From: Anthoceros angustus
Lineage: Eukaryota > Plantae > Anthocerotophyta
Direction of reading: 5' to 3'
DNA: 64,000 bases
NCBI GenBank assembly: GCA_010909165.1
Contig: MU008168.1
Coordinates: 434,001 to 498,000 of the forward strand
The notes beneath the pieces are model-generated. The model had not been told where the DNA came from, searched no databases, and was given only the letters and a program-made list of their open reading frames with translations. Every line of letters starts with the position of its first letter. Positions within the stretch are counted from its first letter, which is position 1. The position numbers were made by a program, and so were the translations under genes. Below are positions 6,680 to 19,306 of the stretch, in pieces.

Positions 6680-6820
6680 GCCGTCTTGTCTGCCAAGCTC
6701 ACCAGCCACGGGCCCCTACATAGTGCATGGAGTGCCCTATGTAGCCGTCTTGTCTGCCAAGCTCACCAGCCACGGGCCCCTACATAGTGCATGGAGTGCA
6801 TAGGGCACTCCATGCACTAC
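6680..6820. repeat. Left junction of the macro-repeat: 56-bp direct duplication plus perfect hairpin
   Basis: 6680-6735 = 6744-6799. 6800-6819 is the exact reverse complement of 6721-6740. 6785-6799 and 6805-6819 form a 15-bp perfect stem. The duplicated segment contains satellite sequence (gccaagctcaccagccacggg). Confidence 0.9.
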
Positions 6821-6847
6821 ACTTCCATGCACCACACAGACACTTCC

Positions 6848-7385
6848 ATATAACCTTTACTATAGCGATGCGCTTCCGTTTGGACTTGGTTCAGCGAGTG
6901 GCTTTTTCACTTCGTACCTGTAAATGTGGCTTTGCCCTAGACATATGTGGATGCATCTTGCTCGTTGTCCCGGTGGTCAACATATTACCACCCATGATGC
7001 CATTCGTGATGTTATATTTGCAATAGCTCGTGAATGTGGGTGTATGGCTTGGAGGGAGAACTAGGCTTTACCTACAGGAATGACAGTTAGAGCCGACTTC
7101 TATCTCGTTCGGGGTGATCAAGTTTCCGTGACAGATGTGGCAGTTACTGACCCAACATAGAACACCACCTTTGAATATATTATCCTATACCGTCCAAGTT
7201 GGACAGTAGCTAGGGGCGACGGCTTCCAAGGTAACTAAGTATAGAGGAATGCAGTCAAACCACCTCTTCATCCGTTTGCCTTGGAGAGATATGGAGCGTT
7301 GGCTTGCATGCAGACCACCCTTTCATCCGCTTGCCTTGGAGAGATATAGAGCGTTGGCTAAGAACTTTGATAAATTGATGGAGTC
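6848..7385 (+). mobile_element. CRE-clade non-LTR retrotransposon 3' ORF fragment (copy 1, 5'-truncated)
   Basis: FTIAMRFRLDL, CKCG..D..G.H...C zinc knuckle, RADF..TDVAVTDP, KVTKY and FHP(F/L)ALERY: the CCHC plus restriction-like endonuclease motifs. Frameshifted. Confidence 0.75.
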
Positions 7386-7507
7386 CTTCATGGATTCTGC
7401 TATGTGTGGGTACCTCTTTCCTATCGGTAGTAGTTTAGGTCCTACTATGGGCATGGAGCGCAACCCTAGAAAGAGGGGCGAGTGTGGTTCCTACGGGGCC
7501 GAGTGAA

Positions 7508-17000: not shown

Positions 17001-17862
17001 TCCGTGGGCCATAGGAGTTCATGTGCCACACCTCTTCCACACACCCTAAACCACACCACACAAGCCACAACGCACCCACCAATCAGCCACCGTGCTCCCA
17101 CCAATCTGCACGCCATACATTTGCAACCACACCTGCCAAGCTCACCAGCCACGGGCCTCTCTTCCATGCACTACACATACATACGCCACACCTCTTGCAC
17201 ACAACCTAAGCCACACCACATAAGCCACAAGGCACCCACCAGCGCACCCACCAATTTGCACGCCACCCATTTGCAGCCACACCTGCCAAGCTCACCAGCC
17301 ACGACTCCTCTTCCATGCACCACACAGATATGTTCCACACCTCTTCCACACACCATAAACCACACCACACAACCCACATTGCACCCCACCAATTTGCACG
17401 CCACCCGTTTGCAGCCACACCTGCCAAGCTCACCAGCCATGGCCCCTCTTCCATGCACCACACAGCCATGTGCCACACCTCTTCCACACACCATAAACCA
17501 CACCACACAAGCCACGGTGCTCCCACCAATCTGCCCACACATTTGCAGCCAAACACAAGCGATGCCACACCTCTTCCACGCACCCTAAACCACAATACAT
17601 GTCACAAGCCACAGTGCTCCCACCAATCCACATGCCACATTTGCAGCCATACCTTGCTCACCAACCACGGGCCTCTCTTCCACATACACACAACCATGCG
17701 CCACACCTCTTCCACACCTCTTCCACACTCTACACAGACAAGCTACCATGCTCCCACCAATCGCATGCCACACATTTGTAGCCATACTTGCCAAGCTCAC
17801 CAATTACGGGCCTCTCTACCATGCACTACACGGACATGTGCCACATTTCTTTCACACACCCA
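14005..17862. repeat. CA-rich satellite array 2
   Basis: Same monomer (measured spacings 137 and 138 bp at 14011/14148 and 17335/17473). Diagnostic variants occur in the same order as in array 1, and both arrays end in the same block (...catttctttcacacacccattttgaatat). Confidence 0.95.
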
Positions 17863-18029
17863 TTTTGAATATATTATGCGTAACTATAAATCGCATATAT
17901 AGAGGCAATGTCCCTTAAATTCCCGATCTCGAGATTTGAGTGTCGCTTGGTTACTTTTAAATACATACCATAGTATACAAAAGCGTACTATGACCCTATG
18001 GCGGAACAAGTCGGGTTTTCCACAAAGGA

Positions 18030-18975
18030 ATCCTCCTTGGTGGTGTTTTGTACTAGCGTTGGGCTTTATGCGCTTTGCTTTGGCCTCTTGATTCTTCCTT
18101 TACAACAAGCCCTTTTAAAAGACTTTGTATCATGAGTTGAGCAGAACCCTCCCTCTTTCAAGTGTCCTTGAGGCAAGATAGGTACAAGTCATCAACGGAA
18201 GCAAGGCAGCTCTTCCCTCCTTTCATGACCCTCTTCACAGACGGTTTTAAGGGGTTGCATGCGCAGGCATCCTTTCTCGACAAACAATTGGGCCAGACCA
18301 ATTCCAGTCCATCCTTTTGGACCCTTCTATTCCAAGGCCCACAACAATCGTCTCTATTCTTGTTCTATGATGGGCGTAGGAGCTTGGCTGTTGGCTTGCC
18401 TATGCATCTGAGAGATTTCACATCGCACCTATAACCTTTACTATAGCGATGCGCTTCCGTTTGGACTTGGTTCAGCGAGTGGCTTTTTCACTTCGTACCT
18501 GTAAATGTGGCTTTGCCCTAGACATATGTGGGATGCATCTTGCTCGTTGTCCCAGCGGGGGCCAACATATTACCACCCATGATGCCATTCGTGATGTTAT
18601 ATTTGCAATAGCTCGTGAATGTGGGTGTATGGCTTGGAGGGAGAACTAGGCTTTACCTACAGGAATGACAGTTAGAGCCGACTTCTATCTCATTCAGGGT
18701 GATCAAGTCTCCGTGACAGATGTGGCAGTTACTGACCCAACATAGAACACCACCTTTGAATAGTAATATTATCCTATACCGTCCAAGTTGGACAGTAGCT
18801 AGGGGCGACGGCTTCCAAGGTTACTAAGTATAGAGGAATGCAGTCAAACCACCTCTTCATCCGTTTGCCTTGGAGAGATATGGAGCGTTGGCTTGCATGC
18901 AGACCACCTCTTCTTCATCCGCTTGCCTTGGAGAGATATAGAGGGTTGGCTAAGAACTTTGATAAATTGATGGAG
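18030..18975 (+). mobile_element. CRE-clade non-LTR retrotransposon 3' ORF fragment (copy 3, best preserved)
   Basis: NRLYSCSMMGVGAWLLA; FTIAMRFRLDL; CKCGFALDICGMHLARCPSGGQHITTHDAIRDVIFAIARECG..AWRE; RADFYL..TDVAVTDPT; KVTKY; HPLALERYRGLAKNFDKLM. Confidence 0.8.
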
Positions 18976-19306
18976 TCCTTCATGGATTCTGCTATGTGTG
19001 GGTACCTCTTTCCTATCGGTAGTAGTTTAGGTCCTACTATGGGCATGGAGACGCAACCCGAAAGAGGGGGCGAGTGTGGTTCCGTTACGGGGGCCCGGGC
19101 TCTTGGTTGGGCAGACGTAACCGCCCTGGCCGCGTTCTTTGTCATGGGAACCGGTCAGGAACGAGTACCGGTGGTCATGTCATGTTGCGTGTGTCCGGCG
19201 GGATACATGGGTGGCTGGAGTTGGAGCATTGCAGCAGCGGGGGCAGATTTAGGTGAAGGTCGAAATGTGGGGGGCTTGTGGGGAAGAGGCATGAAGGGGA
19301 GCAGAG

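Follow-up and report, generated by a model that had tools for sequence, protein, structure and literature searches.

Architecture of the locus

In the window analysed here (a 64,000-nucleotide stretch of Anthoceros angustus DNA), a tandem array occupies 6690-19100, in the intergenic region between two divergently oriented genes, those for PNGase A and guanylate kinase. Three copies of a non-satellite block alternate with two arrays of a C/A-rich satellite of ~138 bp, and the composite of satellite and block is repeated head-to-tail in ~2.5 units of 5.1-6.5 kb each (Table 1). This alternation had been proposed in a reading made before any database search (the sequence-only reading); we found it present and refined its coordinates. 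No further copies of the block and no further satellite were found elsewhere in the 64 kb.

Table 1. Features of the composite array and its flanking genes (positions in the window)
Feature	Position	Strand	Evidence or remark
PNGase A gene, single exon, left flank	4574..6415	-	Pfam PF12222, E 5e-94
Rearranged satellite remnant, left edge	6690..6848	+	Exact 25-nt and 21-nt matches to monomers; TRF row 6680-6799
Block copy 1, without 5' part	6850..7500	+	tblastn to P0001 and P0004, E 1e-17 to 1e-18
Linker 1, 11 nt, block end to satellite	7501..7511	+	Matches 13998-14008 except last base
Satellite array 1	7512..12779 (approx.)	+	C 44%, A 30%; ~138-bp monomer and shorter variants
Block copy 2, full 1.2 kb	12780..13997	+	P0015 residues 15-185 align to 12986-13495
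Linker 2, 11 nt	13998..14008	+	
Satellite array 2, collinear with array 1	14009..17861 (approx.)	+	
Block copy 3, best preserved	17862..19100	+	tblastn to P0001 and P0004, E 1e-27 to 1e-30
CCHC motif (C-x-C-x9-H-x3-C), copy 3	18500..18550	+	Translation, alignment of relatives
PD-(D/E)xK nuclease core and C-terminal motif remains, copy 3	18665..18970	+	Broken by stop and frame change
Guanylate kinase exon, right flank	20823..21332	+	Pfam PF00625, E 4.5e-34

The remnant at the left edge lies ~270 bp upstream of the PNGase A start and contains a 64-bp local duplication (x1.9) and a short palindrome. Copy 1 begins ~570 bp into the block and retains the CCHC motif, the restriction-like endonuclease (RLE) and the C-terminal part of the LINE ORF. 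At the other end, copy 3 directly abuts unique DNA from 19101, with neither linker nor satellite in between; on the right, the array thus stops where the LINE-derived block stops (19100). The same 11-nt linker opens both full units; the leftmost one is without its 5' part. We found no target-site duplication (TSD) around the whole array, the longest shared word being 7 nt.

The satellite arrays showed TRF periods of 132-142 together with shorter variants. The satellite to the left of the block and that to its right run in the same direction; the repeat ends at monomer phase 121 and restarts at phase 99, as expected of an insertion into a monomer. An internal duplication of ~1.8 kb in array 1 (10002-11013 with 11774-12778) accounts for the greater length of unit 1, and in array 2 a higher-order unit of 332 bp is locally triplicated (14886-15926). 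The motif CCCTAAA occurs 26 times in the arrays, once per monomer and never as a dimer. The link to telomeres claimed in the sequence-only reading is therefore weak: the motif stands isolated in each monomer, tandem telomere repeat is absent, and genes lie on both sides. Scans for Rfam families and tRNAs were blank in 6000-20000, and no specific multicopy target of the CRE type, such as spliced-leader genes or tandem telomere repeats, was found there. The Rfam and tRNA scans thus gave no sign that the satellite is a small-RNA gene array targeted by a LINE. Neither a 22-mer of the satellite nor one of the block had a match in a metagenome scan.

The same window contains at least five other abutting kb-scale tandem duplications, at 30-55 kb. 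These are unrelated to the array, which indicates that tandem amplification in this region needs no LINE machinery.

Coding content of the block

The block corresponds to the C-terminal third of the ORF of an RLE-type non-LTR retrotransposon and comprises the post-RT linker, the CCHC motif and the PD-(D/E)xK nuclease; only the last ~370 codons of the ORF remain. Reverse transcriptase (RT) was found neither in the block nor anywhere in the 64-kb window. That the block encodes post-RT, CCHC and RLE sequence had been suggested from the letters alone, and was confirmed by phmmer, by tblastn, by alignment to R2 proteins and by the fold of a relative. Phmmer of 18431-18646 (copy 3) gave 111 matches, the best at 1e-14. 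The Cys/His columns of the CCHC motif are invariant or nearly so among the relatives and align with the CCHC of R2 proteins. Other searches returned nothing: Pfam had no match to seven ORF pieces of the block, a word-index protein search with a 66-aa piece gave no candidates, and none of ten ORFs from block, junctions and satellite was found by exact look-up in a collection of 15 billion proteins.

All three copies are broken. Copy 1 has one frameshift and stops at 7062 and 7158; copy 2 has two frameshifts and stops at 13565 and 13660; copy 3 has one reading frame across 18329-18739, with in-frame stops at 18647 and 18743. Two stop codons are common to the three copies, as is an internal tandem duplication of ~60 bp (starting in copy 3 at 18849 and 18914). 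These common lesions, together with the junctions, indicate that the fragment was already dead when it was copied. Coding homology reaches to ~130 bp from the block end, which leaves a 3' UTR that is short or missing, and no poly(A) or other recognisable 3' tail was found at that end. Judged by its sequence, the block is a pseudogene of an RLE-bearing non-LTR retrotransposon, a fragment of an element and not an element. The array is not expected to have any retrotransposon activity.

Relationships of the block

The block aligned to residues 119-244 of the relative P0015 (E 6e-17). We used this relative, rather than the broken block, for fold comparison. In the PDB, the seven best matches to the predicted model of P0015 residues 100-343 (pLDDT 69) were all R2 proteins (E 4e-6 to 4e-3), and these were the only strong ones; restriction enzymes, Prp8 and Hjc came next. 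The model thus points to a PD-(D/E)xK nuclease fold. Pfam on 16 relatives gave nothing useful. The relatives P0023 (Klebsormidium) and P0040 (Diplonema) have weak RVT_1 matches upstream of the shared domain. Searches with these two proteins returned only hypothetical proteins, from Klebsormidium, Diplonema, Closterium, Symbiodinium and metagenomes, and there was no named CRE, SLACS or MoTeR reference among the matches. The two best short relatives, L001 and L002, lie on short, AT-rich metagenome scaffolds, and in the nuclease region L001 reaches only 64% identity; they are therefore uninformative on the 3' end of the LINE family of the block.

Compared with the R2 group (R2, CRE, NeSL, R4, Hero, Utopia), the block shows the same layout of the ORF C-terminus, with a CCHC motif ahead of a PD-(D/E)xK-type nuclease; its relatives carry RT upstream of this region, and R2 proteins are matched here by the profile as well as by the fold of a relative. 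It differs in being a pseudogene without RT, N-terminal domains or UTRs, and in its CCHC spacing, C-x-C-x9-H-x3-C, which is not that of the aligned R2 chain. Clades of RLE LINEs are delimited by the phylogeny of the RT and by domain structure (PMC4640811). The label 'CRE-clade' is accordingly an interpretation, the block being without the RT on which clade placement rests.

Comparison of the copies

Three collinear chains relate the units to one another: 6849-8870 with 13354-15408, 8205-10010 with 15396-17177, and 11645-13997 with 16663-19100. The 5' junction is the same in copies 2 and 3, as are 30 bases that flank it, and copies 1 and 2 have the same 3' junction and 11-nt linker. Collinearity over the whole length, identical junctions and common lesions are the marks of a local composite macro-repeat. 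Substitution differences per 150 columns were alike in block and satellite (roughly 0-10%), which, together with the collinearity, indicates that the unit was copied as one piece. The sequence-only reading had claimed such copying from the order of the monomer variants; these were indeed collinear between units. The satellite has a higher apparent divergence than the blocks, from which a later arrival of the blocks might be deduced; we rejected this, as the excess consists of indels.

Copy 1 is ~96% identical to copy 3 and ~92% identical to copy 2. In substitutions, copies 1 and 3 are ~1% apart, and each differs from copy 2 by ~4%. Copies 1 and 3 are thus closer to each other than either is to copy 2, which is not the simplest tree for duplication of neighbours. 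Differences between copies were enriched near CAG/CTG (13 of 31 events versus 14% expected, p 1e-4). Much of the difference of copy 2 clusters at these sites and may be of technical origin.

Discussion

The array looks like a macro-repeat that is young and of local origin; none of the findings demonstrates a new mobile element. Most probably (we would put it at roughly 0.7), a LINE fragment was inserted into satellite and local unequal exchange followed. The common stops, the common internal duplication and the junctions, together with the at least five neighbouring tandem duplications, make local duplication at the DNA level the simpler reading, although not a proven one. What the data show is the anatomy, the homology, the collinearity and the lesions in common; from these we infer the following order of events and DNA-level mechanism. 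A copy of an RLE-type non-LTR element, truncated at its 5' end and inactive by then, would have landed inside an array of the ~138-bp C/A-rich satellite. The flanking satellite would have supplied abundant out-of-register homology, and unequal exchange or replication slippage could then have duplicated satellite and fragment head-to-tail into the present number of units. The ~1.8-kb duplication in array 1 and the 332-bp triplication in array 2 would have come later, as would a deletion that took away most of the leftmost unit.

The right edge at 19100, the common start of the units and the 5'-less leftmost unit would also fit head-to-tail target-primed reverse transcription (TPRT) of unit-length RNAs. 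Such RNAs would belong to a non-autonomous composite retroelement, the idea put forward in the sequence-only reading, mobilized by RLE-LINE proteins supplied in trans and spreading the satellite by retrotransposition. The RNA would span the 11-nt linker, the satellite and then the LINE 3' end (the block end); the head-to-tail array would be built up by template jumps or by insertions recurring at one site, and the satellite would be moved by 5' transduction. The abrupt stop of the array at the block 3' end beside unique DNA, the common start of the full units and the loss of the 5' part from the leftmost one are all in its favour, and MoTeR2 provides a precedent of a defective RLE element in head-to-tail arrays (PMC7367193). 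We nevertheless regard this explanation as unlikely. The array has no TSD, the block has no poly(A) or recognisable 3' tail and a 3' UTR that is short or missing, satellite remnants precede the leftmost copy where a clean 5' truncation would be expected, and unrelated tandem duplications of similar scale are present in the same window.

Separate insertions of a satellite-targeting LINE, for example at the CCCTAAA site, were also considered. RLE LINEs are often target-specific (PMC4640811), and the 5' junction of the block falls directly after the CCC of a CCCTAAACC motif. That motif, however, is at the 5' junction, whereas the target would be set by first-strand nicking at the 3' junction. Moreover, the 5' truncation point and 30 flanking bases are the same in copies 2 and 3, the stops and the internal duplication are common to all copies, and the collinear satellite between copies fits the copying of one event. 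Largely refuted by the shared junctions, separate insertions are the least probable of the explanations, and very improbable in themselves. A real locus of a single unit, with the unit number an assembly artefact, we consider slightly less probable still than a composite retroelement. The enrichment of differences near CAG/CTG is in keeping with an artefact, but substitutions also occur away from these sites, and the units differ on a kb scale, by the duplication in array 1, the triplication in array 2 and the truncation of the first unit, which has a left junction of its own. Differences of these kinds are not expected of a falsely duplicated contig stretch.

TE fragments that are embedded in satellites and co-amplified as higher-order units are of the same kind as TE-seeded arrays. 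McGurk and Barbash 2018 (PMC5932611) described such tandem arrays, which start from transposable elements and grow by unequal exchange. As in those arrays, the units here are head-to-tail, contain a 5'-truncated non-LTR fragment and have identical junctions; unequal exchange can account for their expansion, and the array is young and of low copy number. In contrast to those arrays, most of the unit here is 138-bp satellite that existed beforehand, in which the LINE fragment is carried along, there is no dimer of the TE itself, and the units number only ~2.5.

LINE 5' transduction is a route by which flanking sequence joined to the 3' part of a LINE could in principle travel along. The locus differs from products of such transduction and from non-autonomous derivatives in having no TSD or 3' tail, and in the 64-kb window copies of the block occur within this array only. 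MoTeR1 and MoTeR2 of Magnaporthe, as well as Cnl1, are telomere-targeted, CRE-related elements. An RLE-type enzyme, a defective partner (MoTeR2) and head-to-tail arrays are features in common with the present case (PMC7367193). MoTeRs, however, are associated with true telomere repeats, with (TTAGGG)n tracts between elements and a telomere-like run at one terminus, whereas the present array is without tandem telomere repeat, has 4-5 kb of 138-bp satellite as its spacer and is flanked by genes on both sides.

The locus is a clear, small case of a dead transposon fragment in a satellite becoming part of a larger repeat unit. The process has already been described in other organisms, and this is one more case. 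The case would carry more weight if the same junctions were found at unlinked loci, for they would then show that a satellite had been spread by retrotransposons in a land plant. The presence of RLE-type LINEs in a streptophyte genome is noteworthy in itself.

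Layout of the macro-repeat

Tandem Repeats Finder, a repeat finder and self-BLAST all recovered the layout proposed in the sequence-only reading, in which three copies of a non-satellite block of ~1.2 kb (copies 1, 2 and 3, from left to right) alternate with two satellite arrays (array 1 between copies 1 and 2; array 2 between copies 2 and 3); the coordinates were slightly refined (see table). The satellite has a basic period of ~138 bp, some variants being shorter at 72-121 bp (Tandem Repeats Finder), and in both arrays it shows strong strand asymmetry (C 44%, A 30%, G 11%; GC skew near -0.6). 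Self-BLAST produced collinear chains pairing 6849-8870 with 13354-15408, 8205-10010 with 15396-17177 and 11645-13997 with 16663-19100. Array 1 is longer than array 2 because of an internal duplication of ~1.8 kb (10002-11013 with 11774-12778); in array 2, a 332-bp higher-order unit is locally triplicated. In window-wise global alignments, block and satellite showed comparable substitution levels, ~0-10% per 150 columns; indels account for the satellite's lower overall identity. Therefore, the unit of satellite plus block (5.1-6.5 kb) was multiplied whole, and the proposal that it had been copied as one piece was borne out. Some monomers (9787-10213, ~11774-11985 and ~16990-17060) carry an extra GC-rich insert of ~20 nt, whose first five bases are those of the 11-nt linker between block end and satellite.

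Coordinates of the block copies, flanking genes and other direct duplications in the window
Feature	Position	Strand	Remark
Block copy 1	6850-7500	+	ends by motif look-up; begins ~570 bp into block
Block copy 2	12780-13997	+	ends by motif look-up
Block copy 3	17862-19100	+	ends by motif look-up
PNGase A gene, single exon	4574-6415	-	left flank of array
Guanylate kinase exon	20823 onward	+	right flank of array
Direct duplication	30103-31295 with 31331-32513
Direct duplication	34823-35885 with 35880-36905
Direct duplication	42287-43583 with 43649-44925
Direct duplication	50723-52103 with 52096-53478
Direct duplication	52757-54013 with 54010-55259

The block is the tail of an RLE-type LINE

Pfam gave no match to the ORF pieces of the block. 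A phmmer search with 72 residues (18431-18646) against 1.8 billion representatives returned 111 matches (best 1e-14), and tblastn of these matches back to the window hit copy 3 at E 1e-27 to 1e-30. Two of them, P0023 (Klebsormidium nitens KFL_017180010) and P0040 (Diplonema papillatum DIPPA_09513), showed weak RVT_1 matches 5' of the shared region. P0023 combines the RT match with a CCHC-nuclease tail as in the block, so LINEs of the restriction-like endonuclease (RLE) type are present in a streptophyte alga. The only PDB matches of a profile built from 16 relatives were R2 retrotransposon proteins (E 1e-3 to 9e-3), in their CCHC-plus-endonuclease region. For an AlphaFold model of residues 100-343 of the relative P0015 (pLDDT 69), the seven best PDB matches were R2 proteins (E 4e-6 to 4e-3), followed by restriction endonucleases, Prp8 and Holliday-junction resolvases.

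Coding homology sets in after the first ~200 bp of the block (by tblastn, 12986-13495 matches residues 15-185 of P0015), takes in a CCHC motif (18500-18550) as well as the nuclease core, and reaches ~18970, which leaves ~130 bp to the block end. An RT is absent from the block, at most a short 3' UTR is present, and no other piece of an RLE-type LINE was found within the 64-kb window. Thus, the relatives' matches, the R2-like region and the extent of homology identify the block as the last ~370 codons of the ORF of an RLE-type non-LTR retrotransposon; homologues, R2 profile matches and the fold of a relative together confirmed this origin.

RLE clades are defined by RT phylogeny and domain structure (PMC4640811). 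The block lacks an RT, and protein searches with the relatives returned no named CRE, SLACS or MoTeR sequence; the label "CRE clade" is therefore unsupported, the relative in Diplonema, a euglenozoan, giving a faint hint in that direction. In P0040, residues 494-553 and 705-774 each represent the linker-CCHC-nuclease region: a single predicted protein of an unrelated eukaryote has part of an RLE LINE tail duplicated head-to-tail. For three proteins of Closterium sp. NIES-54 (P0243-P0245), the Diplonema query gave only weak matches in the RT region, over ~10% of its length. The library searched yielded no publication on streptophyte RLE LINEs.

Shared lesions and divergence of the copies

All three copies share two TAG stops (7062/13565/18647 and 7158/13660/18743) and an internal tandem duplication of ~60 bp; the LINE fragment was therefore dead before it was multiplied. 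Further frameshifts occur in copy 1 (one) and copy 2 (two). Between copies 1 and 3, ~1% of positions are substituted; copy 2 has diverged by ~1% from copy 3 in its 5' half and by ~4% from copies 1 and 3 in its 3' half, and many of its differences are clustered micro-indels. Difference events lay near CAG/CTG in 13 of 31 cases (14% expected, p 1e-4), with similar enrichment in the proximal satellite. Throughout 6850-19100, differences among repeat copies form micro-indel clusters and lie no more than 2 nt from CAG/CTG more often than expected (p 1e-4 to 1e-5). The pattern is compatible with errors of base-calling or assembly linked to methylation as well as with mutation driven by CHG methylation, and the enrichment test does not separate the two; the true divergence may be nearer 1%.

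The array lies between genes

The satellite had been linked to telomeres, and this link was not supported. The two arrays contain 26 CCCTAAA motifs, roughly one for each full monomer, and none directly follows another. The motif belongs to the monomer, so its many copies count as one event, and finding one permuted heptamer in a unit of 138 bp would not be surprising given the base composition (chance estimated from composition at ~0.3, and at ~0.06 for the 9-mer). With the PNGase A gene on one side, the start of which lies ~270 bp downstream of the array in the sense of that gene, and guanylate kinase on the other, the array lies in a gene-bearing interval. Rfam and tRNA scans found no small-RNA gene in it. 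Farther right, 26020-26703 holds an ORF with a match to the C-terminal portion of the Tub (Tubby) domain (PF01167, E 2e-31). At 28000-30400 the DNA reaches 75% GC, carries tandem repeats of 93 and 216 bp and has long ORFs that overlap on the two strands; in appearance it is either low-complexity DNA or repetitive coding sequence rich in Pro, Ala and Gly.

Origin of the macro-repeat

Copies 2 and 3 start at the same base, preceded by 30 identical bases. Upstream of the block, the satellite stops at monomer phase 121, with the CCC of the CCCTAAACC motif as its last bases; beyond copies 1 and 2, it resumes downstream of the linker at phase 99. Given these phases, either ~23 nt of the target were duplicated (with 5 mismatches in 22) or ~116 bp were deleted, and each is compatible with a single old insertion into a monomer.

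The sequence-only reading had suggested a mobile composite. Unit-length RNAs inserted head-to-tail by target-primed reverse transcription would produce the arrangement observed: the array and the LINE-derived block share exactly the same right end (unique DNA follows copy 3 directly from 19101), both full units begin with the identical linker, and the 5' part of the leftmost unit is missing; moreover, MoTeR2, a defective RLE element, can form head-to-tail arrays (PMC7367193). However, no second locus is known, a search for a target-site duplication bracketing the whole array found none, neither a 3' UTR nor a tail is evident in the block, and rearranged satellite pieces (exact 25-nt and 21-nt matches) persist to the left of the truncated copy 1. 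We consider this the less likely reading, and an improbable one. An exact ORF look-up in a protein collection and two metagenome scans with 22-mers of block and satellite were blank.

The simplest account is unequal exchange around a decayed LINE fragment. A 5'-truncated, decayed fragment would have sat within the satellite, unequal exchange between monomers would have multiplied the composite segment, and local duplications and one deletion would then have remodelled the units. This account is favoured by the junctions and lesions common to all copies, by the satellite on either side of the block and by the kb-scale tandem duplications that are common here even where no LINE is involved: the window contains at least five pairs of direct repeats that abut or almost abut (1.0-1.4 kb, 85-94% identity), and such duplication seems frequent in the region. 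A 2-kb repeat pair 11.7 kb apart (43895-45911 with 55657-57661) may represent LTRs. In Drosophila, TE tandems or fragments have expanded via unequal exchange (PMC5932611). The locus in A. angustus is a real composite macro-repeat of ordinary appearance.
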